Origin: Blastocladiella emersonii ATCC 22665
Taxonomy: Eukaryota; Fungi; Blastocladiomycota
Assembly: GCA_025594325.1 (NCBI GenBank)
Contig: JANHCV010000001.1
Span: 682,001 to 746,000 of the forward strand
Length of the DNA: 64,000 nucleotides
Direction: 5' to 3'
Both the position numbers and the translations under genes were made by a program. Numbering within the stretch: the first letter of the stretch is position 1; each line of letters starts with the position of its first letter. Positions 3,001 through 32,100 of this stretch are shown here, piece by piece. The notes under the pieces are model-generated. The model searched no databases. It worked only from the letters and a program-made list of their open reading frames with translations, and was not told the origin of the DNA.

Positions 3001-4663
3001 CGGGATGAGCGCCGAGGCGCTCGCCCAGATCGCGGCCAACGACGGCGACGACGAGACGCAGGGGCAGGACCGCGGCGAGGACGAGGCCGAGGACGAGGAG
3101 ACGCAGGTCCAGGGCGACGAGGAGGGCGACGACGAGGCCGCGGCGCGCCGGAGACGGCGCAAGAAGAAGCGGGAGGCTGCCGCGGCGGCCGCCGCCGAGG
3201 AAGACCTCATGTCGACGCAGGAGCTCGACAAGTGCACGCTGCTCAACGCCAACACGCTGCTGCCGTACTACCGCGTGTGCCTGCGCGGGCTCGCCGACCT
3301 GTTCAACGCGATCCCGCTGCGCAGCGAGCTCTCGGAATCCCAGGACTACCCGTTCCTGCTCCGCAACATGGCGATTAACTTTCGCCAGCTCATCGAGATC
3401 GTACGTGGTGTTGCGCGGCGAAGGGAGGGTGGACGATGACGGACTAACAGCGCGACCGCGCGCGCGTGCGTGCAGACCAAGTACCGCGACCAGAAACCGT
3501 TCCTGCGTGCGGCGCTCGCCGAGGGGACGCGGTACCTGCTGTCGTTCATGTCGCGGGCGATGCCGCTGATCGAGGCGCTGTTCGCCGAGAACCCGGTCGA
3601 GATCGCCGACGTGTTTTCGCGGGCGCAGCTCGCGACGCGCCAGCTCAACCAGGTGTGCGCACACACCAAGGTGCTCGGCGACCGCACGCTCATGACGCAC
3701 GTGCCCAAGTGCCGCCGCGCCCTGCAGCAGTACGTCGAGGGCGTGCGCCGCCTGTTCGCCGCGCACGGGTTCAACCGGGCCATCAAGACCCGCACCCTGC
3801 GCCACCGCGACCTCACGGGGAACACGGTCATGACCCAGGTCTACCGCGGCGGCGCCAGCGATGAGGATGACGAGGACGATGAGGAGGAGCGCGACGCCAT
3901 GGACACGGACGGCAGCGACTACGACGACAACCCGCGCCGCCGCCGCAGCAAGGCCAGCAAGAGCGGCAAGGGCAAGCGGCGCGACCTCAACGGCCGCACC
4001 GCGCGCAAGAACCCGGCCGCCGCTGCCGCGGGCAAGAAGGGCGCGGCGGGCGTGGGCGCACGACCCGCCGGCCGGCCCAGCACTCTGGCCGACCGCAAGA
4101 AGGCTCGGCCCCCGACGGTCTCGGTCAACGACGTCATGTACGGCGACGAGGGCGAGGTCGACGAGCTCGACGCCGACAAGGAGGAGGACCACGAGGAGGA
4201 GGAGTCCGCGCAATGCCATGATGACGACGAGGCGACGGAGGAGGAAGCGGAGGAGGAGGAGGAGGGCGCCATGGACGAGGACGCCGGCGAGGCGACCGAG
4301 ATCGACATTGCCGTCGACATTGACGAGCTCGAAGACGTCTTTTCTCAGGCGGTGGTGGCGCGCACGTCGTCGCCGCCGTCCTCGTCGTCGGCAGCAGCGG
4401 GGAAGAAGACGCGCACCCGCAAGCTCATCGACGTCGAGGACGAGGCCGCCGTCGCCATGGGCCCGCCGTCCAAGCGCAGCAAGCCCAACGAGGCGCCGGC
4501 CAAGGCCAAGGCGAACCGGAGCGTCGCCGCCAGCAGCAAGGGCAAGACCGCGGCGGCGGCGGCGGCGCCCGCAAAGGAGAAGCCGCGGGCCAGCAAGCCG
4601 TCGTCGGCGGGCGGGCCGCGGCCCAAGTCGGCCGAGTACATTGACAACAGCGACACCGAGTAG
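1..4663 (+). CDS. FANCD2: Fanconi anemia group D2 protein homolog, 5'-truncated by the window; exons <1..3400 and 3476..4663
   Basis: Frame is open from base 2. FANCD2-like segments: 'LVAQVGSG..IEVALRVL', 'FVRSLRDYLDNL', 'DLYIICHKMIG', and C-terminal 'VPKCRRALQQYV...TLRHRDLTGNTV'. Intron 3401..3475 (GTACGT...GACTAAC...TGCAG) joins ORFs 74..3439 and 3470..4663 in frame. Long acidic/basic low-complexity tail. Confidence 0.88.
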
Positions 4664-9328: not shown

Positions 9329-10510
9329 TCATCGACCGAGCGCACCGCCAACCATCGTAATCGCGCCCGTATACGGCGACCGGGCCATGAACCGGAGCCC
9401 CGACCGCGCCCACCACTCGAACGCCTCGGGGCACCGGCCATCGAGCCGCCCGGGCATCTCGGGCGCGTACTTGAGCTCGAGCCCCGAGTGCAGCCACCAG
9501 TCGAGCACCGCGATCTGCCCGTTGCGCGATGCGAGGTCGAGCGCCGACTCGTCGTACTCGAACTTGAGGTCCGCTTGCGCGCGCCACCACTCGAGCACGT
9601 CGACGCTGCCGTACCGCGACGCGAGAGTGAGGATCCGCGCCGGCTTGTACTCGATCGTGATCCCGCTCGCGCGCCACCACTCGAGGATGCGGACCTGGTT
9701 GAGCTGCGCCGCGTTCTCGAGAATCTGCCGGCGCCACGCCGTGCACGTTTCCGTGCGCAGCAGCCAGTCGAGGACGTGCACATGGCCGCGCAACGCCGCT
9801 TCCTCGGCTCCCTCGGCCACCACGTCGTTCCGCGGATACGACCCGGCGTCCATCCACCACTGCAGCACGCCGACGTGCCCGTTCACGCACGCGCCGCGGA
9901 ACGCTGCGCTTGGGTACCGCAGCTGCCGCGCGCCCGCGTACTCGCGCCACCACTCGAGCACCGCGATCTGCCCCGCGGACGACGCCTGGACGAGCGCCTC
10001 GGCCGTGAAAGTGAACGGGAGCCCGCTTCGCTGCCACCACTCGAGCACCGCGGTATGCCCCTGCGCGCTCGCGATGCTGAGCACGTCGTCCGAGTGCGCG
10101 ACCGCGAGCCCCGAGCCCATCCACCAGTCGAGCACGTGCGTGCGGCCCGCGAAACACGCGCGGTCGATGGCGCGCGCGCCGTACTTGAGCTCGAGCCCCG
10201 AGCACAGCCACCAGTCGAGGACGTGCGTGTGCCCGTGCTCGCACGCGAGATCGATGGGCTCCTCGTCGTAATGCAGCGGCAGCTTGGCGTCAAACCGCCA
10301 CCAGCACAGCGCCGCGAGGTTGCCGCGGCCCGACGCCTGGTGCAGCGAGCACCACGGCAGCTGTGGGATCACGGCGCGCTGGACGACAACCGACGTCTTG
10401 GGCAGCACGTAGAGGTAGTTGAGCAGGTGCGCGAACGGCTGCGGTGAACGCGCCGCGAAGACGAGGATGCGCTCGAGGATGCTGGTCGGGAAATCGGCTG
10501 GGCTGGTCAT
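9329..10510 (-). CDS. Ankyrin-repeat protein of the 'GHxxVLxWW' type with F-box-like N-terminus
   Basis: About 10-11 repeats such as ACEHGHTHVLDWW, ASAQGHTAVLEWW, ASRNGQIAVLDWW. N-terminus DFPTSILERILVFA. ATG at 10510 chosen inside the longer 9329..10807 ORF. Confidence 0.8.
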   Translation of the reverse strand: MTSPADFPTSILERILVFAARSPQPFAHLLNYLYVLPKTSVVVQRAVIPQLPWCSLHQASGRGNLAALCWWRFDAKLPLHYDEEPIDLACEHGHTHVLDWWLCSGLELKYGARAIDRACFAGRTHVLDWWMGSGLAVAHSDDVLSIASAQGHTAVLEWWQRSGLPFTFTAEALVQASSAGQIAVLEWWREYAGARQLRYPSAAFRGACVNGHVGVLQWWMDAGSYPRNDVVAEGAEEAALRGHVHVLDWLLRTETCTAWRRQILENAAQLNQVRILEWWRASGITIEYKPARILTLASRYGSVDVLEWWRAQADLKFEYDESALDLASRNGQIAVLDWWLHSGLELKYAPEMPGRLDGRCPEAFEWWARSGLRFMARSPYTGAITMVGGALGR

Positions 10511-10897
10511 TTTGGTTGAACTGCTTGCATTCGTACGGCGTCGCGGGGTGCTTGGATCGACTGGCGGCGGTTGGCCCTCATTTGTACGCGCCCTGAACGT
10601 TACTGTTCGCGCGCGTGCGATCCAAGTCACTGCCCCTCGTGTGCTGCGCGCCGTGGGAAATGGGAGATAAGCCGCACCGTAAACCGCAGTCAACCGCGAA
10701 ACCAGGGGTTCTGGCGGAACTGGCTCCGTGTTTCGAAAGCATGTGATCACGCGTCGTTCAATTTCCCTCAAGGTTCGCAACGCGGGAAAACGAGCGCGCC
10801 GCATCATCGAAAACCTTCATCTATTGTCTTAACCGGACATACACGCTTCTACCATTCCAGTCTTAACTCGGCGAGGACCTCTGCGGCGCCAGGCAGA

Positions 10898-11893
10898 CTA
10901 CGCGGTGACCATACCCACGAGCTCGTGGGCAGTAAATCCGAGGCCGAACAGCCAGCGAAGCATTTCGGGAACAACGCGCGTCGCGTCGTGTTGGTATGAC
11001 ATGGAGCAAAGAAATACCTCGGCCAAATCGTAATTGGAGATCAGTTTGATGAACTGGACTCGGTCGACGCCGTAAGGACCGTCCAAGATCCGCTGCACAG
11101 CGTCCATGTTCCAGCAGTTGAGCGCTGCGAGCGCAAGTGAGATCGCGAACGGTACTCGAAGCTCGCCATGATTTTCGAGGTAAACGCAAAGGGCGCCGCG
11201 CGTTTGCGCGTGCTTGGTGAGCCAAGCTCTCGACCACAACTGAAGCGGGACTTGCTCGTCGATGATGGTAGGAATTAGACGAACAAGTCGGTCGAGACAC
11301 GCAAGCATTCCGTCAACGTCGCCTAGATGGAGGAAAAAGCACGGCAGGAGAAATCTCTCCGGGACGGCGCTCCATCTCGGACGGGAGAGCAGCTGGTCCG
11401 AAGCATCGTCCGAGAGAAGATCTGAGAGAGGGATGCCCAAATCGGCGGGCAGCAGGCGGTACACGTCGTCAAGAACGGATTCCGTGAATGGGTGCGACTG
11501 GCGAGCGCGCACGACGTTGGGATGGTCGCCACCGCACAGCCCACCGGTTCCGCTGCGCAGCGTACCGGGGAACCGCGTTTTGAGGTACCAAGCAAAGGGA
11601 AACTGCCACTGGCGTGACGAGTAGTAGTAGTTATCGAGTTCCGGCCCAGTCATATCGACGGGCTTGCCCGTTGCATCGCGGAAAGAGTCAGTCAAGTGCT
11701 GATACGAGTCATAGCTGACACTGCGGACGACCCGGTGCGCCCAGGGGCGGAGAAAGATCGGTGAGCAAGCGGAATCACGGGTCGCACGAGAGGCAATGGC
11801 AAGGTTGCGAGACGGGCGGGCTAACACAAGGACTTGTTCGAGAAGCTCTTGAGGCATTGCATCAAGTGCGAGATGCTTTTCATTCGTTTCCAT
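10898..11893 (-). pseudogene. METNE-family copy 1, 3'-truncated (no exon 2 seen)
   Basis: METNEKHLALDAMPQELLEQVL, QWQFPFAWYLKTRFPGTL and MSYQHDATRVVPEMLRWL align with the paralogs. The ORF stops after 331 aa, against about 430 aa for exon 1 of intact copies. Confidence 0.75.
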
Positions 11894-12006
11894 GGCGAAA
11901 GCGTGCGAGGGCCGAGAGCGGGAACGGGGCAGTCGGTGGCGTCACTTGGCCTCCGCGGTGGCGCTCGCCTGAGATGCGGTTAGGTGACTAAACAGCTGAC
12001 CACGCG

Positions 12007-12489
12007 TTGAACATCTCGGCGACACTTCAAGATCGGATCGGTCACCACGAATGGGGCCCAAACGAGAAGATTTCGGCCATCCACCACCTTTCGCCCTCGC
12101 TTGCTGAGCTTTCGATTTGCAGTGGCAACGCCGACGTTGCTGTCATTCGAGCGCTCGTAGCACGCCTGCCCCCGAACCTTACCAAGTTGCGACTTGAAAA
12201 CGTTCGGCTTGATGATGCAGGTGTTGCCAAGCTGCTGCCCGCGCCTCCCTTGTCGCTCAAGCATTTGAGTCTCATGGATAACTATGAAATCACCGATCGT
12301 TCAGTGCACGCTCTCGTTGCTCGCTTCCCACCCGCCCTGACCGATTTGAACCTCGTGTCCACGAAGATCACTGGCGCTGGATTCCGAGCGATCAAAAGGG
12401 ATGCGCTTGACTCGCTCCAACTCCGTGTTTCCATGGCCGTGTACCGGGAAGGGAAGAATTATGCTTTGCAAACCCTTGATAAAATGTGA
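12007..12489 (+). pseudogene. RNI-like LRR fragment related to the 45-50 kb LRR family
   Basis: LPPNLTKLRLENVRLDDAGVAKL..LKHLSLMDNYEITDRSVHALVARFPPALTDLNL: 3-4 repeats only, no family N-terminus, TTG start. Confidence 0.6.
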
Positions 12490-13204
12490 AGGTGGAAGGG
12501 CGAATGGCGATGCACGTGAAGCTAAGAAGCAATGCATGGATTTGGAAAATCGGACGCTCAATACGGAGCCGGAATTGAAGAGTGCTAGAGGCGAAGAGGG
12601 AGGCCGGAGCGGTCGTCAGTTTGTTGTTGGTCAGTGACGCGTCCCCCACTCTTGCGCGCGCCCTCACCCTGGCTGCGCCACCACCTCCACCGCACCTCCA
12701 CCGCAGACCAGAGTGCGGAGAAGAGACTCGGATTTCTTTGCGCGATAGATCTTCGTTGGGGGGCAGCAGCACTAGGCTCTTGCCGGGACTGAGCGTATGC
12801 CTGCAGATTAGCGAGGGTGTCGGACGGCGCGGTATGGGGTTGTTATGTGTGGGGCCGAGTTCGATTCCTATTCCTTGGCTCCTTGACGACGACTCCTGTG
12901 TGGTAAGAAGCAGCGCGCAATCCGACTTAGCCCTCCGAAATGCGGCCAATTCCTTCCCTTTTTTTTTCTTCCCGCCCCCTCTTGTATTCGCTCGCCCATT
13001 GTACGATTTGTGTCGCGAGAATTATGATTTCATTCCTGCCTCGGCCCCGCAGTGGGCCTTTTCAACTCGATCCGGAAACTTGAGCTTGACGCCAGGTGGC
13101 TGCCCGCTGCACTCGGCGAGTTGGTCGTGGCCATCCCAGCGGCTTGGTAAAGTTCAAATTTTATGATGAACAACATTTCATTGGCGAGCGTGAAAGAGTT
13201 CAGG

Positions 13205-14138
13205 CTAATTGAGCGACAGCAATCGCACCGCGACAGCTGGTTCCATCAGTTCCGCTGGAATCCTGAGGTATCTACAGGCATCAGGAACGGCGCGGAGGAC
13301 AAGTTCAGCACACTCAAGCTCGTTTTGGGCGATGAGGTCGAGCACGATTGATTGAGCGCGTTTCACGTCCATCCGCACTACAAAAAAATGCGGGAGGAGT
13401 TGTGCCCAGCCTTCCGTGCCGAGCGGGCACTTTTCTGCAAACCGAGGGACCATGCTGTACAGCTGAGAATTCCTGACGACAGATTGGACAAGCTTCCTGG
13501 CGCTCGTCAAGGATCGAGGGAAGTACGCGAACAAGCCGGTCGAGGCACGCAATCATGCTGTCAACGTCGTTGGCATGCAAGAAAAAGTGCGGGAGGATCA
13601 GACCCTCGGGGATGGCGCTCCAGCCGGAGCGATTGACAAGTGTGTCCGAGTTGCTGTCAATATCCGCAAAGATGCTCGTGATCGACTTGCCCTTGTGAGG
13701 TGAGGTCAAGCGTTACAAGTCATCAAGGACTGGAGGCGAGAACGGATGGGTCGCACGTGCAAAAAGCACGCCTAGATGCTCGCCGCCACAGAAACCGGGG
13801 GTCCCGTCGCAAAGGGTCCCCGGGAAGCGCGTCTTGAGATACCAAGTAAACGGGAACTGCCACTGCCGCACCTCGGGAAACCGCTCGCCGAGTTTGGGTC
13901 CGGTATCGTGGCTGGGTGAACCGGCGGAATCCTCGGAAGAGGCCTGGTATATCGCGAACATGACACCTTTTGTAACGCGCCGCGCCCACGGGATCAGGAC
14001 GTCGGGCGAGCGAGCCGCGTCGCACGCCACGCGGGAAGCACAGACAGGCTGAATTCGCGGGCGGGTCAAAGCAAGGACCTGCTCGAGGAGCTCGAAAGGC
14101 ATTGCGGCAGGTGTGAATAAATTTTCATTGGTTTCCAT
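13205..14138 (-). pseudogene. METNE-family copy 2, with nonsense codon and large internal deletions
   Basis: In-frame TAA at 13713..13715, then ORF 13314..13709 continues in the same frame. After 'ILDER' it shifts to late exon-1 sequence (YSMVPRFAE..WAQLL) fused to late exon-2 sequence (RAQSIV). Confidence 0.8.
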
Positions 14139-14352
14139 GTTGTGGGTTCTTGCTGCTCGGGAGAGACGGCGAACTCGCGGGTGTGATCAAGGTGACTGAG
14201 GTCAGCCAGCCCTTCGGCCCGCGCGTTCTGTCAGTCATTCGCCGCCCTCTCGTCTCCCACTGTTATCAAGCTCAGATCCGGACGCAAACAGGACAAAGAG
14301 AACAATACAGAATAGTTTTGAACTATTTGACTGGGTCTTGGGTTAAAATCAA

Positions 14353-16640
14353 TCAAATGAGGCCGGACGGCTCAAGGATCGCGCCCTTCACATGCGCGAG
14401 CTGGAAGACGCTGGCCATGTCCACCAGCTCGCGCCGGAAGTCATTCTCCTCCAAGACGGCCGGGATCGCCTTGAGAATAATGACCGGAATCTCGATGTCG
14501 CCGTCGAACAGATGCTTGCGAACAATCGACTGCGCGCGGATCACGTCCATGGACTCGGCGAGGGCCGCAGGCCCACCTTCCGCGTTCGCGACGACTTTCC
14601 AAATCCAAGGCTGGGTCGAAGTGCACCAGAACACAATGTGTTTGGCAAAGAAACACGGGTCGTACGTGGCCAGCATCTCGCAGAGATCCTGGAGCGCACG
14701 CCGGGTGGTTTCGGCGCGGATGTCAGCGTCAGCGAGCAAGTGGGGACCACGACGAAGTATGGTCGCGAAACGGCGCGCAGGCGGGCTCACGTCAGGGTCG
14801 AAGCGACAGCGGAACCGTAAAAGCAGACGTTCGAGGACGCGAAGCGCTTGCGCAACGTATGGTTCAGGACCGTCGTAGCTGGGCAAAAAGCGATTAATAC
14901 GCGCAAAGCAATGTTCTGCGACTGCAAGGATCACCAGGAGTCGCGTGGAGCGCGAAACGAGATCCTCGCCGTCCATTTCGTCCAGCACAGCGTCAAATGC
15001 GCCGTGAGCTGCGGATGGGACCAGCAGCCCAGCGAGGTACTCTGTAAGCACGCCCGGGCAATTGGCCCCGGCAAGGTTTGGGTCCTGGAGTTTGCCATAT
15101 AGAAGCTTGCGGAACTGGGCCTGGTCGATTGGCGACTCGTCACTCAGAAAGAAAGCGAGCGCGCTTCGGGAGTGAGCTGCAAAGTTAGCGCCAATGATGC
15201 CGACAGGGTCAAGTCCCAACGATCTGGCAGCGGCACAGATGCTGGTGCGGAGCGAGTTTGTCACGGAGTTCGACTCGGTTGGGAATAAAGCTACATTGTG
15301 TCGAGTGGTATGAGTGCGCTGAGCGCCAAGTAAGCTGCAAGGTTCGTACCAGAAGCCAGGAGAGAGGAATGATCCGCGCCTGGGACGAATCGGCGCAGCA
15401 CATCCACAATATCGTCGTGCCGCTCGCCACCGAGAAAATGCTGGAGAAGCTTTGCCCAGTGGAATTGGGCTAGCAGTGAGCGCTCGGCAAATTGAGAGAC
15501 AAGGTGATACAAGCGCGGCTTGCGCACCACGTAATTGACCATGTTTGTCGCCAGGTGGGCTTGGGTGACCACGTCAAGTTCCTGGATCCAATGTGCGTCA
15601 AACTCTTGGAACAAGACCGCGAAAAGCTCACCGTGCCCTTCCTCAACATAATTCGCGAAGCAAATCGGCCACATCTGGCGAGGCGGGGGACAGTTGGCAA
15701 GTAGCCAGCGAAGCATGGCCGAAACCACCTGGACTGCGTTGTGCTGGTGGCGCATAGTGGAGAGGAAAATTTCGGCAAAGTTGTGTCTGAACAGGAGGGC
15801 AAGGAACTCGGCTCGATTCACCTCGTACGGACCATCCAAAATCCGTTGCAGCGCGTTGAGATTCCAGCAATTGAGTGCCGCAAGTGCCAACGAGGACGTG
15901 AAGGAAAACTTCACGGAGAGATCTTGGCAAATGCCGTTGAGTGCAATACGGGTCGCCAAGTGCTCGCTGAGCCAAGCGCGAGACCACAGAGAGAGCGGAA
16001 CGCGCTCGTCAAGAATTGAGGGCAATACGTGAACAATTCGGTCGAGGCACGCTATCATGCTGTCAATGTCGTTGACATGCAGGAAAAAGCAAGGGAGGAT
16101 CAACCCTTCGGGTACGGCAGCAAAAGCGGTGCGGGTACGCAATGCTTGCAAGTCGCTGTCAAGGTCCAAGAGCAGACGTTCGATCAATTCGACTTGACGA
16201 ATCGACGGCGTGTGGTACACGGCATCCAAGACGGGTGGCGAGAAAGGATGCGCAGGGCGTGCAAGGATCACGTCGGGATGCTCGCCGCCGCAGAGTCCGG
16301 GAGTCCCGTCGCGAAGCGTACCTGGGAAGCGCGTCTTGAGATACCACGTGAGCGGGATCTGCCACTGGCGCACCTCTGGAAACCATCCGTCAAGTACGGG
16401 CCCCGAGCTGTAGGTGCCGTTATCCACGTCGTAGCCATTTGAAGCTTCGTAGGTTTTAAAGGTGACGCCGGTCATAACGCGCTTGACCCAGGGAATCATG
16501 ACGACTGGCGGGCCAGCCGCTTGGCGGGCAAGTCGAGTCGCAGAAGCGAGCTCACTCCGCGGACAGGCCAGCACGTGGACCTGTTCAACTAGTTCGAAAG
16601 GCAATGCATCAAGTTGAAGCGGAGTTTCATTCGTTTCCAT
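14353..16640 (-). CDS. METNE-family copy 3, intact, 742 aa; exons 16640..15350 and 15290..14353
   Basis: Phase-1 intron 15291..15349 (GTACGA...ATGTAG) joins ORF 15291..16640 to ORF 14353..15264 in frame (LAS-A-LFPTESNSVTNSLRTS). Confidence 0.8.
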
Positions 16641-16828
16641 TGTGGATTAGTGCGCTCGCGGGAGAGCGGGTGCGACAAGGCAGCGTGTGGCGTCTCGACC
16701 CCTGGTCCAGGGGCCCTGGATCGCACTCATCGCGCCTGGAGCAAGTTACCTGAGATACAGTCGGTAAGTGAAACTAAACCTATCATATTTGACGATATCA
16801 AAAATCAATCCGACAAAGCGTAAACGCG

Positions 16829-19135
16829 TCAAAGGAGCCCAAACGGCACGAGGATCGCGTCCTTGACGTGAGCGAGCCCGCCCACGTTGACCATGTCAAC
16901 GAGCTCGCGTTGGAACTGCTCGGCCTCCAAGACGGCCGGGATCGCGCGGATGATGATATGATGGTAGGAATCTCAATCTCGCCAACGAGGAGATGATCGC
17001 AAATAATTGACTGCGCGCGATCAACGCTCACTGCCGCGGCGAGGGCCGCGGAGCCGCCATTCGCTTCCGCCACGATTTTCCATACCCAAAGCGCGGTGTC
17101 AACGGAGCAGGGTCCGCCACGAGCGGCAAAAAGGCAAGGATCGTACATGGCCAGCGTCTCGTAATATTCATGAAGCGCACGCTTGGCCGCCTCGTTGGAG
17201 CCTTCAAGGCCCTCCCTCGTGTACAGAGCGCGGCTGTACAAATTGGTGAACCTGCGAACAGCCTGGCTTTCCGCGGAAACGACGCGGCAGCCGTAGCGCG
17301 AGACCAGACGTCTGAGAACGCCAAGCGAAAGCCAAACGAGGGGATCAAGGTCGCGTTGTGAGTAGAGTGAGAGCAAGCTTTGTTGATTGCAGTAGTTTCC
17401 AACCGCGGTGATGACTAGGAGCTGGAGTTTGCGCGATTTGGCGTCCTCGCCGTCCAGTTCAAGTAGCACGGGCTCGAGTGCAGCAGTGGGAAAAAACGGT
17501 GAGCCAAGGTGATGAGGTGATGAGGTGTTGAGCAAACGCATCGTCATAAACACCCGCGCCTTTTTTCCGGCCCTCGAGGCACGGGTAGAGTAGCTCGCGA
17601 AGCTTCGCATGGTCCAGTGGTGACTCGGGGCTCAGAAAGTACACGAGCGTCTCATGCGAGAGAGCCCAAAAGTCATGAGCAACAATCAGGTTCGGGTCGA
17701 ACCCAAGCGCCTCAGTGGCGGTGCAAACGCTACGGCGGAGCGTATCGGTCAGCTTGGGCTCATCCTTAGCCGTCAAGGCTACCAGTGGAGGGAAAGCGTG
17801 CTATTCAGCCAAGGTTCCTTGCGTTACGTGTGAGTGAGGCGAGAGGAAAACACAAAGGGAATCAGCAAATGGTGGACATGCTGACGCACATCCCCAATGA
17901 CGCGGTCGTGTCGCTCGCCGCCAAGAAGATAACGAAGCAAACGCGACCAGTAAGCGGTGTTGAGGAGATAAAGCTCGATGCACAAGGTAGTGGATCCGCG
18001 GCTCGCGCGCTACGAACGCAATCATGTTGGCGGTCAACTGACCCTTGGTCTGCGGGCTGAATTCATGGACGCGATGAGAGTCGCACTCCTCGAAGACTGA
18101 AGCAAAGAGCTCCCCGTTGAAATCTTCCTCCACTTTGAGGGCGAAGCAGAGATCGCGAGAAGGGTCGTCCGATCGGATCGTGAACCCACGATCAAGCAGC
18201 CAGCGTAACATTCTGGGGACCGTGCGGGCCCCGTCGTGCTGGTGGCTCATGGTCTCGAAGAAAAGACTGGAGAGCTCGTCGTGCGAAACCGCGTCGAGGA
18301 GTTTAGCTTGGCCCGCCTTGTACGGACCGTCAAGGATCCGCTGTAGCGCGCCGAGGTTTCACGAGTTGAATGCCGCAAGCGCGAGCGCTTCGGGGTACGT
18401 CATCGAAGGCGGCTCGTAATGGTAGTGGTACATGATTTGGCGAGTGTTGAAGTGCCCAGTGAGCCAGGTTCGCGACCAGATAGAAAACGGGAGGTGTTCG
18501 TCAAGGATCGACGGTAGGACGCGAATAAGCCAGTCAAGGCAAGCAATCAGGTTGTCGACATCGTTGACGTGCAAGAAAAAGTAGGGGAGGAGGAGACCTT
18601 CGGGTATCGCGCTGAAACGGTTGCGGTTCCAGAGCGCCCTTGAGGTCGCGTCCATGGTCGCGATAATATCTGCAATCGACTGAGTCGTTGCGCTCGGCGG
18701 CATACGGCAGATGGCGTTGAGCACATTTGGCGAAAACGGGTGAGTCGTGTGGGCGAGGACCACGTCGGGATGATTACCGCCACTGAGAGCTGCAGTTTCG
18801 TCGCGAAGCGCGCCCGTGAACCGCGTCTTGAGGTACCAGGCGAAGGGGAACTGCCACTGGCGCACGGACGGGAAGACCTGGTCGAGTTTGGACCCGAAGA
18901 CGTGATCCCGCTTTCCGTCGCTGACAGGGCCGCAAGCGGTTTCATAGTCGTTCCAGTTCACGCCTGTGACAGTGCGTCGCACCCACGGAAGCAGAACCGA
19001 GGGCGAGCGCGCGGCGTCGTGGGCAAGCCGACTCGAGGCGACGAGCTCCGTGTGCGGGCAGGCCAACACGAGGACATGCTCGAGTAGCTTGGGTGGCAAT
19101 GTATCAAGTCGGAAAGGTATTTCATTCGTTTCCAT
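16829..19135 (-). pseudogene. METNE-family copy 4, full-length but disrupted
   Basis: TGA at 18359..18361 where paralogs have Trp (NxWN). Frameshifts near 17960, near 17560 and near 16955 (ATCAT duplication). Paralog-like C-terminus 'AILVPFGLL*' ends at 16829. Confidence 0.82.
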
Positions 19136-19179
19136 TGTGTTTTAGTGTCGGTGGACGGGGAGAAGAAGCCCTGATCGCG

Positions 19180-19368
19180 TAGTCTCGGTGCCAGACTCTA
19201 CGGCCACATGGTAGGCGTGGGTGGCCTCGGGCATTCAGAGAAATGACCTCGGCCGGCCGACCGTGGGTAGACGTACGTCGCGGGTCAGCAGGCGCTGGGT
19301 AGGGCCGCCTCGGCCCACTGCAGGCATCCCGCCGCTCCCCGCGACAATACGGTCTGGCAACGAGACTA
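19180..19368. mobile_element. 189-bp non-autonomous DNA transposon (MITE) with 17-bp TIRs and a 9-bp TSD
   Basis: Left end TAGTCTCGGTGCCAGAC (19180..19196); right end GTCTGGCAACGAGACTA (19352..19368), a 16/17 inverted match. Flanked by CTGATCGCG at 19171..19179 and 19369..19377. Confidence 0.85.
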
Positions 19369-19527
19369 CTGATCGCGACGAGGTGTGTGATCACAGATTT
19401 ATCACCGCCGTTTCAAGTTGTCGCACGCGTCCTTTGCCCGCGCGCGGGGCGAGAGTCCGCGACCATCATCACTCGAGCGGGAAGCAAAAGAGATACATGA
19501 ATGAACAAATATGTGAAACGAAATCAA

Positions 19528-21831
19528 TCAAATGAGGCCAAACGGCACGAGGATCGTGTCCGTGACATGAGCGAGACCTGGAACCATGGCCATCTCGACG
19601 AGCTCGCGTCGAAACTTCTCGGAATGAAGCACGTTCAGCATCGCGCGAAGAATGGTGACGGGAATCTCGGTCTCGCCATTCCGCAGATGCTCGCGGACCA
19701 TGCCCCGCGCTCGGCTCACGTACATTGCCGCGTTGAGGGCCGCGGGCCCGCGGTCCGCTTCCGCGACCAACTTCCACGCCCAAAGCGGGGTGTAGATGGA
19801 CCAGAACTCGCCATTCACGGCGAAGAAGCACGGATCGTACGAGGCCAGAGTCCGGTGAAAGTCATCAAGCGTGCGCTTGGTTGCCTCGGACGGGATATCG
19901 ACGTCATGATACGTGTGCAGACCGCGGCCAAGCATGTCCATGAGCAGCCGGATCGACGGACGCTCTACGGCAACGAGTCGGCAGCGGTAACGCGCGACGA
20001 AAATCTTGAGCAAGCGAAGCGCATCGTAAACTTTACGCTCAGGGCCTTCGACCGAGTACAGCGAGCCCAAGATCCGCTTGCTGCAGAAGCACGCGAGCGC
20101 AATGATGACCTCAAGCTGAGTTCGGCGCGGCTGCGCGCTTTCGCCGTCCAGTTCGCGGAAAACAGGACCAAGGGCGGCATCGGACGAGGGCGGAGCAGTA
20201 AGCATCATAAAATGCTCAACGAGTGCGTCCGCATGCTGTTCAACGAGAGTAGTTGTGCCCTCGATCCGCGGGTAGAGCAGTTTGCAAAGCTGCGCGTGGT
20301 CCACTGGCGACTTGAGACTCAAAAGGTGAACGAGCATGTTGCGGGACAGCGCGTCAAAGTTGAGAGCAACCACCTGAACAGGATCGATTCCAAGAGTTTT
20401 GGCGGTGGAGCACACACCACTAACAAGCCTTTCCAATGGATTACTGTCGATGAGGACTAAAAACATGAGGAGCATGAGCGAGTTAGTTCAGATCATGCCT
20501 CCCGTGGCTCGAACGCGTGAAAAAGTACCATTGGCCAAAACCGTGGGATGTTCAGTGCGAGGGATATAGCGCCGCACAAGTTCAACAACGTCGTTGCGCC
20601 ACTCGCTGCAAAGAAGGATGCCAAGCAAGTCCGACCAACGCGATATAGTCAAAAGTTTCTGCTCTGCGAACGTGTGCACGAGGGAGTAGACTTGCGGTAC
20701 GTCGGCCACGTACTCAAACATCTTCTCAACCAGCTGGCTTTTGGTCTCCGCATCAAACGCTTGGACGCGGTGTGAGTCAAACTCCTCGAAGACGGCAGCG
20801 AACAGCTCGCCGTAATGTTCGTCCTCCACGTGCAGAGAAAAGCAGAGAGGATCGGAAGGGTCGTGAGAGCGGATCGTGAGCCCACGGCCAAACAGCCAGC
20901 GCAACATTTCCGGGACCACGCGCGGCGCGTCGTGCTGGTGGCTCATGGCGCAGAGGAAGAGTTTGGCCACCTGGTAATCAGAGTTAGCGGCAAAAATTTT
21001 GGTCTGGTCCACTTGGTAAGGGCCGTCGAGAAGCCGTTGAAGCGCATGGAGGTTCCACGAGTTGAGTGCCGCGAGCGTGAGCGATTCGGAAAACGTCATG
21101 AGCGGCAGCTTGTCATGAACGCCGTGCAGGTGCTCGCGAGTGGGAGAATGCTCCGTGAGCCAAGCTCGCGTCCAAAGGTGGAAAGGGATTTGCTCGTCCA
21201 CAATTGCGGGCAGACAGTTGACGAGTTTGGCAAGGCACACAAACATGTTATCGACGTCGTTGGCGTGAAGGAAAAAGAAGGGGAGGGCTAGACCTTCTGG
21301 GACGGCGGCCCAAAAGTTCCGGATCAGCGGCGGGCGGGCCGTGGTCAAGTCCAGCTCCGCAACGTGGTTCATGATGTCCGCGATTGACTCGTTGGCGAGG
21401 TCCGGCGGCAAGCGGTAGATGGCATCGAGAACACCCGACGAAAACGGGTGCGTCGTGCGGGCGACGACCACATCGGGATCATCTCCGCCAGCGAGTCCGG
21501 ATATGTTGTCGCGAAGTGTACCTTCGAAGCGCGTCTTGAGGTACCACATGAACGGCGACTGGCACTGCCGCACGCGGGGGAACCGCATGTCAAGTTTGGG
21601 TCCCGTGTAAAAGTGGCCGTAAGATCCAAAAGAAGACTCGTAATCTTTGTACGTGACGCCAGTGACGGTGCGCCTCACCCACGGAAGCAGAAGAGAGGGT
21701 GAGCGCGCAGCGTCGCGGATTGCTCGAGTGGCTGCAACGAGCACGGGGTGCGGGGAGGCCAGCACAAGGGCGTGTTCGAGTAGCTCGGGTGGCAATGCAC
21801 CAAGTCGTAAAAGTTTTCCATTCGTTTCCAT
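19528..21831 (-). CDS. METNE-family copy 5, intact, 743 aa; exons 21831..20529 and 20456..19528
   Basis: METNGKLL start at 21831. Phase-1 intron 20457..20528 (GTACTT...ACTAAC...TTTAG) gives an in-frame join LAN-V-LIDSNPLERLVSGVC. Confidence 0.8.
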
Positions 21832-21927
21832 GGTGAAAGGGGTGGGCGAGCGAGGAGAAAGGACTGTGGCGGCGGCGATGCGCTTGATCACGCCGACCCT
21901 TCATCACCGTTTCAAATCACTCGGCCG

Positions 21928-22371
21928 ACGCGTTCGCTCATCCCACGCAAAACCTCACGGTCCCCGTTAGAAACGGTCGAGATGGAAACCTCGGGCCACG
22001 CAACGAACGATCTCAAGGGAAAGAATTCGGAGTGGCGAGCTCGGGTGATGCGGCGTGACGCGAAGCGGACTGCTCGAGTCACGGCCGCGCCGGCCATGGT
22101 CACAACGGGCTTGATGGCCGTCTATGGGCTTCGTAGCGAGTTGAAGAAGCAGCGCGGGCTGGATATTGTGCGTGGCCAGCGCGGGCAGTGCGGGTAGCAA
22201 CTTTGGGTTGATTGTGGTCGGTGGGGAGTTCGCGAGTGCCTACGGCTGGGTGCAACAACAAGCGCAGAGAGTGGTCGAAAGGTGGGTCTGAGAGCCTGCT
22301 GCGCGGCTCGAAAGCGAGTGCAGCTTGCCAATCGCTCAACGCGTTCGCTCATCCCGCGCGGAACCCCACGG
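21928..22371 (+). repeat. 33-bp imperfect direct repeat (21928..21960 and 22339..22371)
   Basis: ACGCGTTCGCTCATCCCACGCAAAACCTCACGG versus ACGCGTTCGCTCATCCCGCGCGGAACCCCACGG: 29/33 identical, all four differences are transitions. Confidence 0.8.
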
Positions 22372-22474
22372 CTCGACTCCATTGCGGCGTTTTGAGCTAC
22401 GAATCAAGACTTTATGTATTGAGCAAGAACAATAAAAACAAATCAAAATCAGCCGACCGGGCCAAGGGTCGCGC

Positions 22475-24744
22475 CTACAAGACGCCAGGACGTTCCATCG
22501 CGTACTTGTTGGTGAACATGAGATCGCGCCGGAACCTGGGGCAAGCGAGCACGTCTGGGAAAGCGCGAATGATAAGAGCGGGAACCATGGTCGCGCCTTC
22601 TTCGATATGAATTTGGACAATGAACCGCGCGGAGGCTACTGGCACGAGTTGGGCGAGGGTCTCTGGACCGTCTTCCGCGTCAATCACAAGCCTCCATGCC
22701 CACAGCGGGGTCTCGGTCGACCAAAACATTCCGTGAAAAGCAAAGAAGCAGGGATCGCAGATGGCCAGTGTCTCGGTGAGCTCGTACAGGTCAAGCATCG
22801 CAGCAACGGTGGGAACCTGCCCGTTGAGAATGGTACGGCCGCAGTGTTTGAGCAGCGCCGCAATCTGGCGGGCACCTGGGCGTTTTTTAGTATCCCAAGC
22901 GTAGATGCGATGACGGAAACGCAAGGTCATGCGCTTCAGGCGAGAAAGGGCGTGAGTAAATTCCGGCTCGAGATCCTTGTTTGGCAGCAGAAAGTGAGAA
23001 TGAAGCTCGAAGCAACTTTCACCAATTGCGACAATGACCTGGAGCTGAATCTTGCGCGCTTCGTCGTCGTCGCCGTCCAGCTCACAAAGCGCCGCGTCAA
23101 ACGCGTCGTCAGAGAGCGCAATGAGATGATACGCAAGGACGCCATCACAATCGGCCGCATGAAATTTTGAGTCGTAAAGCTTGCGGCAAAGCAGTTGGCG
23201 GAAACAAGCTTGATCGAGCGGCGATTCGGGGCTCAAGGAAAATACAAGTGCTTCTCGAGTATGCACTGCAAAGTTGATCCCAACGACTTGGATCGGATCA
23301 ACACCAAGTGATTTGGCGGCAGCACACACGCCAATGCGAAGCGAGTTGGTTATCTCGCTAGGTCGTTTCTCGGCTAACGCTAAAGATGATGAAGGTGGAG
23401 GACGTTAGCTAGGGCAAGAAACGCGAGCAGCATGAAAGTACCTGAAGCCAAGCTTGTAAGGAGCTCCGCGGCAGGGACATATTGGCGCAAGTCGTTGACG
23501 AGCTCGTCGTGACGCTCGCCTCCAAGCAGGTGGGACAGCAGTCGCGACCAGTGTCGTGCGGTGAGCCATGAGAGCGCGGCGAAGCGTGGAACCAAGTGGT
23601 ACACTTGCGGCTCACGCGTAACGTGATCGACCATTTTCGCGGCCATTTCCTGTTGACGGTGTTTCTTGAACTCCAGGACTCGATGAGAGTCAAACGCGTC
23701 GAACAAGGCAGCGAACAGGTCGGCACTGGATCCAGCTTTCACGTACGAGGTGTACCTGATCGGCTCGCATGAAGGGATCGCGAGCCCGCGTTCAAGCAGC
23801 CAGTGCAGCATTTCGGGCACCACCCGCGCCGCGTCATGCTGGTGGCTCATGGAATTGAGAAAGATATTAGCAAAGCCCTCCTTGGAAAGCATGGTGATGA
23901 AGTCAGCTCGATTCACCTTGTAGGGTCCGTCCAAGATGCGCTGCAGCGCGTTGAGGTTCCAGCAGTTGAGCGCCGCAAGTGCCAGCGAGGCCGGAAAGGG
24001 GAAAGAAGCTTCGTAATGAGTGTAATGAGTGTAGGAGAGCGCGCAGCGCGTGAGCGGGTGTTCGGTAATCCAAGTACGCGTCCAAAGGGTAAGTGGGACG
24101 ACATCGTTGGTCGTGGATGGAAGTACGCGGACAAGACGGTCGAGACAGGCAATCATGTTGTCAACGTCGTTTGCGTGCAGGAAAAAGTAGGGTAAGACGA
24201 GGCCTTCGGCAACAGCACTCCAGCCGCGGCAGTATCGCGGCGGCGTAAACCAGTCTTCGTCTCCACACGAGTTGATCAGGAGGCTTCCGATCTGCCGGTG
24301 ACAGTAATGGGGAAGCTGGTACACGGCATCTAAGACTGGCGGTGTGAACGGATGCGTCGTGCGCGCGGTGATGACGTCGGGATGCTCGCCTCCACCAAGG
24401 CCAGGGGTCCCGTCACGGAGCGTGCCCGGGAAGCGCGTCTTGAGGTACCAAGCGAACGGGAATTGCCACTGCCGCACCGCGCTGCGCCAGTGGTCAAGGT
24501 CGGGTCCTGTATGGTAATAGTTGCGTCCCACGTCGCAGCTATTGGGAGCTACGTAAGCCTCGAAAGTGACGGCGTTGACCACGCGTTTGACCCACGGAAG
24601 CAGGACGACCGGCGAGCGGCTCGCGTCACACACGAGGCGAGCTGCAGAAACGAGCTCGCTGCGCGGACAAGCCTGGACGAGGACCTGTTTGACGAGTCCA
24701 AGTGGCAATGCATCAAATCTAAGCGTTTTTTCATTCGTTTCCAT
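22475..24744 (-). CDS. METNE-family copy 6, intact, 735 aa; exons 24744..23442 and 23379..22475
   Basis: Phase-1 intron 23380..23441 (GTACTT...GCTAAC...TTTAG) gives an in-frame join LAS-A-LAEKRPSEITNSLRIGVC. Confidence 0.8.
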
Positions 24745-26466: not shown

Positions 26467-28937
26467 ATGGCCGCGACGATCAATGGAACTGAACCGCTAC
26501 TCGATGCAACGGGCGGCGCCGACGCCAAGCTGAGCGCCGCGGGCCCCGGCACTGCCCCCGGCGCCGACGACGACGCCTTCCTCGCGCCGTTCCTCGCCGA
26601 CGACTTTGACCCGGTCGCCTATGCGCGCGAGCTGCTCGGCAGCCCCGACGACGGCGAGGGGTATTCCGCCGATTCCGACGCCGATGCCGATACGGGAGCC
26701 GGGCCGTCGTCCCCGAAAGACAAGGCCAGCGACGACGAGGTCGAGCTGCGTCTCGCGCGGCTCGCCTTCACGTCGAGCGACCTGACGCGGCAGATCGAGC
26801 AGCTCGTCATCGACCACTTTGACGAGCTCGCGCGCTCCGTCGACGGCTACCTCGCCGCCGGCCACCGCGTCGCCGGCGTGCAGGCCGAGCTCGAGGCGCT
26901 CGCCAAGGACGCCCAGGCGTACGGCTGTTCTGACGCCTCTTGCATTTCAACGACTAACTCTGCCTGGTGTATAGATGGCGCGCCTCAGTCGCCGAACCGC
27001 GCGACGAACTCCGCGCCGTCCTCGCCGCGACGCGCGCGCACCGGGACCTGGCCTCGCTCGCGCGGGCGCTCGAGGCATACCTCGCCGCGTCCGAGATCCT
27101 CCCCGCGGTCGAACTCATCTCCTCGCCCACCACCGTCCCCGACGCCGACCTCCCGGCCCTCGCCGCGTCCGTCGCCGCGCTCCACGTCCTCGCCGCCGAA
27201 TCGGACCTGGCCGGCGTCGACGCGTTCGACGCGGCACACGCGAAAGCGACTGCCGCGCGGTCGGCCTTGCTGGCGCGGTGCAACGGGATGATCCACCCGC
27301 GCGACCCGCCGCGCGCGCGCACCGCGCTGGCGGGGCTCGCGGCGCTCGGGGTTTTGGGCGAGTGGCACGTCCTGCGCCGCGCCAAGGTCGCGTCGCGCAT
27401 CGATAACGAGGCGCGCGAGTTTCTCGAGGCGCTGGCGAGTGCCGAGCACCGGCACGCGCAGCTGCAGCAGGCGGCGGCCGCCGCCTCGGGCGGTGGGGTG
27501 AGCGCGTCAGGCTCGCGCGGCGACCTCCGCTCCGCGGGGCAGCAGCGGCGCGACTCGAACCCAGCCGCCGCGGCCGCGTGGACGCGCCTCGAGACGTGCC
27601 TGGACGTGGTCGCGACCGAAGCCAAGTTCCTGCGCGTGCTGCTGGGCTTCCACCCCGTCGACGGCGCGTGGGACGAGTTCTGGGCCGGCGTCACGACGAC
27701 CCTCGCCAAGCTGTTTACCGCGCCCGCTGCGACCCGCAGCAACATCCTCGGCGCCAACTACCCGCGGATCGTGCGCCTGCTGCGCGCGACCGAGTCGCGC
27801 TTTTCGGACGCCGGCGACCTAAACCTGGCGTCCGCCGCGGCCCCGCTCGCCGCTCCGTACCTCGCGCGCGTCGAGTCCGCGATCACGGACGCCGTTAACC
27901 TCGCGTTCCCGGCGCGCAACCCAGGGACCGCGCCGTCATCCCCGCACTACGCGCAGCTCGGCGCGACGCTCGCGTCGCACCTCTCCGCCGCGCGCGAGTC
28001 CGGCCTGCTGGACCCGACCGCGCGCCTCGTCGCGGCCGCGCTCGACACGCTAAGGCTGCGGTCGGCCGCGCACGTTGCGGACACGCTGGCGGTCGCGGGG
28101 GTCCCGAGCTCCGCCCCCACCGCGACGCCCGCGCAGGCCGCGGTGGCCGCGTCCGCGTCCGCCGTGTACGCCGCGTACGACGCGGTCGCGTCGACGGTCG
28201 ACGAGTCGGACCCCGCCCTGGCCCCCGTCGTCGCCGCGCTCGACGCGGTCCACGCGACGGCCGCGGCGCTCGCGGACGCGCTGATGCAAGCGGGCGTGGC
28301 GGCGGCGGACGCCGCGATCCTGTCCCCGCGGACCGCGGGCGACTGGGCGGGCGAGTTGGGGGTGCGGCTCAAGGCGACGCGCGACGTCGTGGCGCGGCTC
28401 CACTGCGGCGCCGACGGGGACGCGTGGCGCCGCGTGCTCGTCGAGACGCTCGCGGAGCATGTGGCGGCGTCGCTCGCGGTCGTCGTCGGGACGCAGATTG
28501 TGAAAGGAGGGAGTGGGGCCAAGGTGCGCTGGGTCAACGAGCTCGCGGGGATCGAGGCGCTCCTCGCGTCGCTCCTCCCGACCTCGGACGCCGAGGAATC
28601 GGGCCTGTGGACGCTGCCCGCATTCCGGCACATCGAGTCGCTCCGCGGCGCGGTGCTCGTCGACTGGCCCGCGCCGGGCGCCGCGGGGTCCGACGACGCG
28701 CGCGCGAGTTTCCGCGCGAGCCCCGTGGTCGCGGCCGTCGTGCTCGCCGGGATCGCAGCTCGTGGAACCCCGCTGTGGAAGCAGCGCCGCGAAACGCCGC
28801 GCGAGACGCTGGATTTCGTCCTGGACATGATCGATCTCGCTCAGGACGGCGGCGAGCTGCCGCGCGAAGTCGCCGAGTGGGTGCGCGGCGTGGGCGGCGG
28901 GGCGGGGGAGTGGTTGGACGCGGTCCAGGGCGAGTAG
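26467..28937 (+). CDS. COG5: Conserved oligomeric Golgi complex subunit 5; exons 26467..26918 and 26975..28937
   Basis: 'FLADDFDPVAYARELL', 'LARLAF..SDLTRQIEQLVIDHFDEL' and 'GANYPRIVRLL'. Intron 26919..26974 (GTACGG...GACTAAC...ATAG) is in frame. Confidence 0.75.
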
Positions 28938-29135: not shown

Positions 29136-32100
29136 TCAGTCGCCGCCTCTTGCGAGTGTAGACGACGACGACGCCTCGCCAGCGGCCCCGCCATCATTCG
29201 CCGACCCCGACGCGGCCGCCGCGGCCGCCGCCGCCGCCGCCGCTTGCGCGTTGCGCCCGCCGGTCCTGCGCTTCTTCCCGCGGCTTGCGGCGTCGAGCTC
29301 CTCGATCTCGGACCGGAGGCGACGGTTCTGGAGTCGTAGCTGGTGGAGCTCGTACTGCCACGACGTGCAGCGGACGGGCGAGAGGACGTCAAACAGGTCG
29401 TCGCTGTCGTCGACGACGGGGGTCGCGGGGAACGCCTGGATCTCTCCCGCCCCCGCGCCGAGGGCGGCCGCGTCGACAACGTCCGTGCACCGGTGCAGTG
29501 CGAACCGGACGTCGCCGGGGGTCGCGGCGTTGCCGGGGACAAACGACGACTGGACGAGCAGGTACTCGCCCTTCTTGTTCTTGATGCGGTGGGCGAGGGC
29601 GACGACGTTGGCGGCGCGGACGAGGTCGAGCGCGCGGCGGAGGCGCGGGAGGTCGTCGATGTGGACGAGGTCGAGGAGCGATTTCCCGACGAGCTCGGCG
29701 GCCGTGAACCCGACGAGCTGGTGCGCGTCCGTCGACACGTGCAGGAACAGGCCCTCAAGGGCGAGTTTCGCCCACATGTCGACGTCGTGGACGCCGCCGG
29801 CGCGGACCACGTCCTGGCGGTGCACGCGGACGACAGGCTTCTCGCGGCCCGTCAGGACCACGAACTTCTTCCCCTTGGACTTTTCGCCCTGCGTGCACTT
29901 GCCCGACACCTCCATCCACATGTACCCGGAGTGCTTGCGGCGGATCCGGTACACCATGTTGACCGGGTGCACGCCGTTGGACGACTCCTTGAGCTCGCGC
30001 ATCACCGACACGAGGTCGCCCGGGTGGCAGAACTCGGACAGCGACCGCCCGATCAGCTCGTCCTCGGCGTACTCGAGCACCCGCTGGCAGTCGCTCGACA
30101 CGTACAGGAGCACGCCGCGCAGGGACAGCACGTGCACAAAGTCCATCTGGTCGACCAGCGCGCGGTAGAACAGGTGCGCCGCGTACACGGGGTCGCGCTC
30201 GCCGACTAAATCGGTCACGTCCATGGCGAAATGGCCCGTCAGCGGCACACCGCCGACCGCCGTCGACACGGCGGTGCCCGACCCCGCGGGGCCTGCGGGG
30301 ATCACCGCACCCGACGCAACGGCCGCCGATGCGGGCCCGCTCGGCACCACGAGCGTCGCGGCGGGCGGGATCACGAGCGCGGGCGCCTCGTCGTACGGGC
30401 GGCGCGCCACTGGGTGCTGCTGCGCGTTGACAAACCGCGCCGACTGGTGCGCGGCGAGTGGTGGTCCGGCGAGCGGGCGCGCGCCGGCGGCGGCGGCAGC
30501 GGCAGATGCGGCACCGCCGAACGCGGACGTGGGGGCCGACGAGTTGATGGACCCGCCCGACACGTCACCGCCGCCCGCGGGGTACTCGGCGGCGTCGGGC
30601 GCGTACCCGCCAAACTCGTCGGTGCGCGCGGCCGCGTACTCGTCGCCGGCGCCGCCCTCGACACCGTCGACGTCCATGCCGGAGGCCGGCGGGAGGTACC
30701 CGGTGGCGCCACCGGCAGGGAGGTACCCCGCCGCAGCCCCTCCACCGCCGCCGGGATCGTTATCGGTGACGACGCGCGGGACGTGGACGGGCGCGTCAGC
30801 GATCTGGTAGTTGACGACGTAGGTCCCGTCGCGCATGCGCTGCATGATGGCGTTGGGCTGCTCGACGAGGTCGACCTGGAACCCGACAAAGTAGGCAATC
30901 TCGTCGTCGCGGTCCCACGCGATCGGGATGATGGTGATCAGGTTGATGAACGGCTCGCCGCCCTTGCGGTAGTTGATGAGCGTGAACTGGCACTCGCGGC
31001 GCGCGTCGAGCGCCGATTTCAGGCTGGCCACGGTCGCGTTGTCCGTGTACCGGCGGTGCGACTTTTCGTTGACGAGCCCGTCGGGCGACTGCAGGAACCG
31101 GCAGTTGCGCCCGATGCAGTCGACGGCCGAGTACCCCGTCAGCCGCTCGAACGTCTCCGAGACGTAGAGGATCGGCTGGTCCGGTTTCCGCGCGTCGCTC
31201 ACGACAAACGAGCACGACATGTCGACGGGGCCAATCGACACTTGCGGGTTCGGCCGCGTCGCGACGCGCGCGAGGACGCCCATGATGTCGAACCCCGTCG
31301 CCGAGTAGAGACCGGGCACGGAGGTCCGCGGGTTCGGCGGAGGCGGAGGCGGCGGCGGTGGGGCGGGCTGCGCGGCACCGGCTCTGCGCCGTGTCGCAGC
31401 AGCAGAAGTCGCAGCGGGCGCCGGCGCACTCCGCGGCGCGAGCGCGTCGACGGGCCGCACGCCGAACGGCGCCGCGGTCGTGACGGCGCCGAGGTCGGGC
31501 CGCGCGCCGCCCGCAGCCGATGACGAGGACGGCGGTGGCGGAGCAGGCCGTGCGCGCATGACGGCGGCGGAAGATTCGAGGCCGACGGGCGCGGCCCAGG
31601 TCGGGTCGACGCCGCGCAGGGCCGGGTTGGCAGCGGGCGCCGCGGCGGCCGCGACGCCGGACCGGACGTGGCGCGCGAACGCGGACGCGGCGGCGGCAGC
31701 CGCGGTTGTCGGCGGCGCGCCGAGGTCGAGCGGGTACGTCGCCGCTGAAGGCATGGAGTAGGGCGGCGACGTAGTTGTTGGCGGGTGTTGTGGCGCCGTC
31801 GGCGGGAACGCGGGTCCGACGGGCGAGATCCCCTCAGTCCCAAGCTCGCCCGCCTGCTGGAGCTGCTGCTGCTGCTGCTGTTGCTGGAGCAGGAGCTGGC
31901 GCTGGGCAATGACGGCCTGGCGCGACACGGACGCGGGCGGGAGCGAGGTGAAGATGGGGATGGCGGCGCGGGGCGCCGTGTTGCGGGTGCCGAGCGGGAG
32001 CACGGCGGCGAGGTCGGCTGCCGCATCCCCAGACGCCGCGGGCACGGTGGAGGTGGCGGGTGGCGGCGGGGTGGCCATGAAGTCGAGGTCCCACGGCTCG

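Follow-up and report, generated by a model that had tools for sequence, protein, structure and literature searches.

A tandem array of paralogous two-exon genes in Blastocladiella emersonii, members of a family seen only in Blastocladiella and Catenaria and with a predicted helical solenoid product

What does a locus encode when two kinds of open reading frame (ORF) take turns along one of its strands? The question is raised by a 64,000-nucleotide stretch of Blastocladiella emersonii ATCC 22665 DNA (assembly GCA_025594325.1, contig JANHCV010000001.1, positions 682,001 to 746,000 of the forward strand), here called the window, in which the ORF list between 9 and 27 kb shows two alternating minus-strand types, 'METNE...' and '...LGxDP...YDPCFFA...'. 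The reading that we favor, with moderate confidence, is that of a local tandem array of paralogous two-exon genes from a Blastocladiales-restricted family, whose product would be a solenoid and most likely a non-catalytic scaffold or adaptor. Six paralogous METNE units occupy window positions 10898-24744 on the minus strand, each where a first-pass annotation made from the letters alone had placed it. By the ORF list and tblastn, three are intact two-exon genes and three are truncated or decayed. Along the window, they run as follows:

10898-11893, minus strand: copy 1 (c1), a 331-aa ORF with family residues 1 to ~320, truncated at the array edge (ORF list, alignment A1)
13205-14138, minus strand: copy 2 (c2), decayed, with residues 1-214 and then ~364-403 in another frame (ORF list, tblastn)
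14353-15290, minus strand: copy 3 (c3) exon 2, including the stop codon; spliced coding sequence 2229 nt, or 742 aa
15291-15349, minus strand: c3 intron, 59 nt, GTACGA...TAG, phase 1
15350-16640, minus strand: c3 exon 1, 430 codons plus 1 nt
16798-19135, minus strand: copy 4 (c4), a full-length pseudogene split among several frames and ORFs (ORF list, tblastn)
19528-20456, minus strand: copy 5 (c5) exon 2; spliced coding sequence 2232 nt, or 743 aa
20457-20528, minus strand: c5 intron, 72 nt, GTACTT..CTAAC..TAG, phase 1
20529-21831, minus strand: c5 exon 1, beginning METNG
22475-23379, minus strand: copy 6 (c6) exon 2; spliced coding sequence 2208 nt, or 735 aa
23380-23441, minus strand: c6 intron, 62 nt, GTACTT..GCTAAC..TAG, phase 1
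23442-24744, minus strand: c6 exon 1

In the two-exon model predicted here, each pair of alternating ORFs makes up a single gene. Splicing c3, c5 and c6 at these coordinates gives coding sequences that are divisible by three and end in a single terminal stop, and the intron coordinates, the phase and the lengths of 742, 743 and 735 aa given in the first-pass annotation were reproduced exactly. All three introns are in phase 1, open with GTACGA or GTACTT and close with TAG, a CTAAC branch site being present in two of them, and the upstream ORF of every intact unit terminates a few codons past the intron GT. Full-length alignments at 25-38% identity connect the array copies to three annotated B. 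emersonii paralogues, KAI9168299 (H9P43_007671, P0001), KAI9190415 (H9P43_001849, P0002) and KAI9168272 (H9P43_007644, P0003), with which they have in common an N-terminal LPxELL module and the motifs HPF, PEGLxLPxFFL and LALxA..W; unlike these paralogues, the copies lie outside the public protein set, start with METNE and have a much lower GC content at third codon positions (GC3). Residues 4-741 of spliced c3 align to 11-778 of P0001, and residues 1-741 to 3-733 of P0003, both of which are annotated as single proteins.

The intron itself recurs in these relatives. The P0001 gene, on another contig, has a 64-nt GTACGC...TAG intron in phase 1, and the gene for P0025, a family member in the window that comes from the family's deepest branch, carries a phase-1 GTACGT...TAG intron of 66 nt at about 55526-55593. 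In P0001, P0025, c3, c5 and c6 it falls in the same alignment column (827 of alignment A3) and in the same phase, a position therefore common to the array copies and to paralogues (checked in P0001), while the P0007 subclade is without it. Because the frame is kept in three diverged copies, the paralogue alignments run from end to end, and the intron column and phase are common, we read the alternating ORFs as parts of one predicted gene, in agreement with the original proposal. The conserved blocks quoted in support of that proposal are likewise present in alignments A1 and A2.

The copies are, judged by their divergence, old: amino-acid identity over the full length is 44-50%, and dS, the synonymous divergence, is 1.2-1.4. 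In tblastn searches, c1 is matched by c3 and c5 over residues 1-315/319 only, and the spacer at 21900-22470 gave no match at E<1e-4 that would betray a seventh, eroded copy. Three DNA runs of the source sample yield contigs that cross c4 with 0 differences, and its lesions are therefore not assembly noise. The array thus arose by local duplication and is eroding copy by copy, with three copies intact and three decayed. As a separate observation, the first 15 nt of each copy (window 24730-24744 in c6), ATGGAAACGAATGAA, are near-invariant in all six, pseudogenes included, with dS elsewhere >1, and in all copies this stretch is preceded by a CT-rich tract and a CAC(A/C)ATGG start context.

Why were these genes not in the record? 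The public annotation of the B. emersonii ATCC 22665 genome comes from ab initio predictors run within funannotate (PMC9730499). No protein at least 50% identical to the array copies was found in a collection of 15 billion proteins that includes this genome's own protein set, and therefore the array appears to be missing from the public annotation; the claim that it is unannotated holds to the extent that the representative library offers no closer match than a paralogue at ~34% identity. GC3 is 0.65-0.69 in the array copies vs 0.84-0.93 in neighboring genes and in paralogues elsewhere (0.86 in P0001, 0.92 in P0025), and this atypical value is probably the reason that gene finders missed them. 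The whole array forms a low-GC island (0.58 vs ~0.70), its spacers ranging from 0.53 to 0.61. Decay by repeat-induced point mutation (RIP) or methylation was considered as the cause of the low GC and rejected, since TpA/ApT is 0.5 and observed/expected CpG is 1.21, as in the flanks.

How far does the family reach? A profile built from six exon-1 sequences and run with HMMER against 1.84 billion representatives (E<=1e-3) collected at least 45 clusters at 50% identity, the best E being 2.7e-92 in hmmsearch. For all 30 family proteins whose source was looked up, the organism is B. emersonii, B. britannica or Catenaria anguillulae, and each is recorded as a 'hypothetical protein'. Searches of prokaryote genomes, 2.9 million viral contigs and metagenome contigs yielded nothing beyond pattern matches, and none of these was confirmed as a relative; a word-indexed protein search with c6 exon 1 gave no match, and one with profile A3 returned five paralogues already known and nothing else. 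Within this coverage, the family occurs in Blastocladiella and Catenaria only. The array copies belong to this set of Blastocladiales proteins (P0001-P0045) by profile match, by end-to-end collinearity and by the common intron position. Two further features of the window concern the same superfamily:

51791-56883, minus strand: a distant pair of tandem genes, P0025 and one other, from the same superfamily
54530-56883, minus strand: P0025 (KAI9188842/H9P43_000264), annotated, 100% identical to window 55594-56883

Close to this pair in sequence is P0047 (H9P43_000257, 991 aa), which is 95-100% identical to the P0048 region (57106-57938) and to P0025 exon 1 (window 55594-57938); this protein reflects either a second, nearly identical locus beyond the window or the merging of two genes in one model. 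Fusion partners were considered as hints to function and set aside, as the helicase of P0005, the TPR/p23 of P0010 and the class-3 G-protein-coupled receptor of P0043 look like products of merged gene models. P0028, also set aside, looks like a low-complexity artefact.

A maximum-likelihood tree of 44 rows, with five usable array copies, unites these copies in one clade (SH-aLRT, the approximate likelihood-ratio support, 99) whose sister is P0002, 4.87 Mb along the same contig. The array clade is nested within a B. emersonii clade; the tree places all 10 identified B. britannica members in one clade, seven of eight Catenaria members in another and most B. emersonii members in a third. As these clades are mostly composed of one species, the expansion is largely species-specific, and together with the decay of three of the six copies this bears out the copy turnover suspected in the first-pass annotation. 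P0002 (H9P43_001849) is annotated at 600 aa, a model that seems to lack its N-terminal part: residues 1-418 of c3 align from L002:9584 onward, ahead of the start called at 10001. A second, decaying array of the family lies at L003:9008-17377 (JANHCV010000014); it is intronless and comprises P0007, P0015 and P0009 along with two unannotated fragments.

Conserved blocks alternating with highly variable segments had been taken, before this analysis, as a hint at a recognition or defense family. Pairwise dN/dS, the ratio of nonsynonymous to synonymous divergence, is 0.32-0.37 among the intact copies, a rough estimate at this level of dS. Sliding windows of 40 codons among the same copies gave no value above 0.86, so that positive selection in the variable patches was not seen, and the tightest constraint falls on the block RQWQFPFxWYLKTRFPG...HPF (0.19-0.27). 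No sign of diversifying selection emerged from these comparisons. With an overall ratio of 0.32-0.37 and every 40-codon window staying under 1, the variable patches look like segments under relaxed constraint rather than ones shown to diversify, and none of the tests lends support to a recognition or defense role.

What kind of protein would these genes encode? Pfam gave no match for the window proteins, which were searched as separate exons, nor for any of 42 family rows, in line with the initial impression that no known domain could be recognized. Searches of PDB sequences with the full-family and the N-terminal profiles gave chance-level matches only (Npl4 at E 0.16, TrfB at E 0.5). An AlphaFold2 model of the 781-aa paralogue P0001, built from the 42-row alignment, is an all-helical solenoid of ~48 helices with a pLDDT (predicted local distance difference test) of 86.2 and a pTM (predicted template modeling score) of 0.76. 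We compared this model, by Foldseek and VIA-align, with PDB, AFDB clusters, Swiss-Prot, BFVD and ESM Atlas. The fold resembles generic alpha-solenoids only, namely pentatricopeptide repeat (PPR), tetratricopeptide repeat (TPR), HEAT/ARM and ankyrin (ANK) proteins, with TM scores of at most 0.37 by query and Z no higher than 9.2, on short pieces. Among AFDB clusters, the three best matches are 'Uncharacterized protein' entries, whose accessions resemble those of the family's Catenaria members.

PPR, TPR and HEAT/ARM proteins likewise form all-helical superhelices, and the top Foldseek matches are PPR10 (4m57) and Arabidopsis PPR proteins (E 5e-5 to 1e-3). The METNE family is nevertheless unlike them, with TM scores of 0.13-0.25, no Pfam match, irregular helix lengths and no 34/35-residue periodicity; in true family members, the PPR and TPR Pfam profiles find no match. 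By extension from a paralogue that is 28-34% identical, the product of the array genes would be a soluble all-alpha solenoid of ~740 aa, and on the same footing no enzymatic motif appears to be conserved across the family. Residues conserved family-wide are mostly hydrophobic or proline, and the HQHD and NDVD motifs specific to METNE units are not conserved at that level.

Judged from this fold class and conservation pattern, the product is most likely a scaffold or adaptor that binds proteins and has no catalytic role. Less constrained surface segments would be carried on a conserved helical framework with a mostly hydrophobic core, and a short, conserved N-terminal module of three helices (LPxELLxxVLxLAxP...W) would serve as a docking piece. 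A number of points weigh against this reading, and they touch each of its layers. The fold was modeled on a paralogue and not on a window copy, and the model of c6 exon 1, made from 6 sequences, was poor (pLDDT 55) and was left out of the fold search. Support for the two-exon model is evolutionary, and the paralogue gene models that it is compared with are themselves ab initio predictions. Saturation of dS makes the dN/dS values rough. A scaffold or adaptor role is the default reading for any solenoid without catalytic motifs. Finally, GC3 in the array is below that of paralogues elsewhere and half of its copies are dead, a combination consistent with weak expression or with progressive loss of the entire array. 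Taken overall, the gene family is real but ordinary, an orphan whose copies are gained and lost over time.

The scaffold reading can be made more specific, in a form that we regard as doubtful: these proteins would be substrate receptors of the SCF type (Skp1-Cullin-F-box), their N-terminal LPxELL module acting as a divergent F-box for docking on Skp1 and their solenoid binding the substrates. The mostly species-specific expansions of the family would then mirror those of F-box genes in plants and nematodes, and the family does resemble F-box proteins with C-terminal repeats in its N-terminal LPxE(L/I)L, in three helices followed by a long repeat domain, in its mostly species-specific tandem expansion and in its many pseudogenes. 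In a comparison of 27 family N-termini with 24,736 Pfam models (cut-off E<=10), the F-box group supplied three of the five families that appeared and the only recurring ones, with F-box-like in two members (best E 0.012), F-box (0.21) and F-box-like_2 (0.18). The matches in P0042 and P0036 cover the LP motif and start at profile position 2. In the A4 consensus LPxELLxxVLxLAxP...W, the LP is conserved at 90% or more and the W is invariant, and in the P0001 model, helices at 18-28, 32-46 and 49-62 come straight after the LP motif.

All of these F-box matches (four among the 27 N-termini) are, however, sub-threshold, which sets the family apart from recognized F-box proteins: the best scores 15.9 bits vs a cut-off of 24.3, none lies in a window copy, and with PF00646, PF12937 and PF13013 the gathering score was not reached. 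The A4 profile found no F-box protein among PDB sequences, and phmmer with the N-terminus of P0042 found no match. The distance from LP to the conserved W also speaks against an F-box, as it is probably ~9-10 residues longer than in the Pfam consensus of canonical F-boxes.

That the family consists of highly degenerate ankyrin proteins, derived from Ank_4-type 'VLxWW' proteins like the array's neighbor and with most repeats eroded past recognition by hidden Markov models (HMMs), seems to us unlikely. The neighbor is a true Ank_4 gene 90 bp from the array:

9329-10807, minus strand: ankyrin-repeat gene (Ank_4, 'VLxWW' repeats; Pfam Ank_4 E 3.9e-13), not a member of the family

The segments LALAALNCWNLNALQRILDGPYxVN and VVPEMLxWLLxRG do read like degenerate ANK helices, a resemblance already pointed out in the first-pass annotation. 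Language-model features of c6 exon 1 and P0001 agree with it, pointing to Ank_4/Ank_2 clusters at 0.93-0.95, the ten best named matches all being of the ANK clan; yet the features in common number 159-162, below the tool's guide value of 170, and recognition scores are low. The single hhalign match pairs residues 319-337 of P0001 (ETIPPILDWLVGEGW) with the repeat core of the neighbor, HGHTHVLDWWLCSGL, at the 'ILDWLVGEG' segment flagged earlier, and a repeat HMM built from the neighbor gives weak matches at the LALAAxxxW segment in about eight members. Against these stand the profile comparisons, all of which fail: Pfam, which scores Ank_4 in the neighbor at E 3.9e-13 by the identical test, shows no ANK match at E<=1 in any of 42 rows or in the window proteins, and hhalign of A3 gives Prob 0.4% against the neighboring ANK protein and Prob 0.2%, E 0.38, against its 9-repeat profile. 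ANK structures match the whole P0001 model at Z 6.1-6.6, a range that counts as noise when a model is helical, the helix lengths and spacing of that model are irregular, and most of the protein lacks a 33-residue repeat. The degenerate-ankyrin suggestion thus draws support, below threshold, from language-model features and none that is significant from Pfam or hhalign. The neighbor carries an N-terminal motif, FPTSILERILVFA, that weakly resembles LPxELLxxVLxLA of the family (hhalign P 0.028 over 17 columns), and an exact look-up of its ORF gave no record.

It could also be that the array is dying and silent, the three 'intact' copies being no longer expressed or functional and their open frames a leftover, an outcome that we consider quite unlikely. 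Half of the six copies have decayed, GC3 falls far short of the values in other genes and in paralogues elsewhere, with spacers also lower in GC, gene predictors left the copies uncalled, and the runs listed for the source sample comprise four of DNA and none of RNA. Set against this, three frames of 2205-2229 nt are open and their splice signals are intact despite a synonymous divergence above 1.2, and the start context ATGGAAACGAATGAA and the CT-rich tract upstream of it are kept in all copies. The dN/dS of 0.32-0.37, in turn, suggests that most of the divergence accrued under constraint.

An elaboration of the F-box proposal strikes us as very unlikely: Blastocladiales solenoid receptors with an F-box-like module would sit on an SCF ubiquitin ligase, recognize changing targets, for example proteins of mobile elements or viruses, through their variable surfaces and turn over in copy number as an immune-like system. 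Family members do adjoin Helitron- and Fanzor-type elements. Hardly any credence is due to the last account, that of a cargo carried by a mobile element or an integrated giant virus rather than a host gene family: although the array is a low-GC island (0.58 vs ~0.70), Helitron-like genes flank P0001 and a TnpB/Fanzor-like gene flanks P0002, and the top language-model feature matches include Nucleocytoviricota clusters, such an origin appears unlikely because the units hold no transposase, integrase or viral hallmark gene, no relative was found in the 2.9 million viral contigs, the spliceosomal intron position is common across the family and the copies make up a single local clade, the family tree around them being of vertical structure; BFVD fold matches are, moreover, generic (E>=0.008), and no signature of RIP or CpG depletion is present.

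For the tandem array of solenoid genes that we favor, the practical consequence is that a model zoosporic fungus gains at least three probably functional genes and the description of a family in its annotation, and the case illustrates that ab initio annotation of a high-GC genome misses genes with atypical codon usage. Having no Pfam model and being confined to Blastocladiella and Catenaria, the METNE family is a candidate for a new family entry, as well as for the study of expansion and decay among orphan repeat proteins. Were the F-box lead to hold up, it would suggest that ubiquitin-ligase receptors have undergone a lineage-specific expansion in early-diverging fungi.

The surroundings of the array and of its paralogues offer some further observations. 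Directly adjoining P0002 is a 446-aa gene with a Cas12f1-like_TNB (TnpB/Fanzor-type) domain (L002:12334-13674; JANHCV010000001, ~4.887 Mb), and two Helitron-like/PIF1 helicase genes (L001:1-6240; JANHCV010000010) lie 4 kb from P0001 and P0006. In the window, two paralogous leucine-rich repeat (LRR) genes of the RNI-type LRR_6 class (47116-48321 and 49181-50356, plus strand) occupy another stretch of lower GC, and a related LRR fragment at 12007-12489 lies inside the array between c1 and c2. Core genes with a GC of ~0.72-0.76 flank the locus: a FancD2-like gene at 74-3436 (plus strand), a COG5-like gene at 26967-28934 (plus strand) and a multi-PAS-domain gene at 29139-32204 (minus strand).

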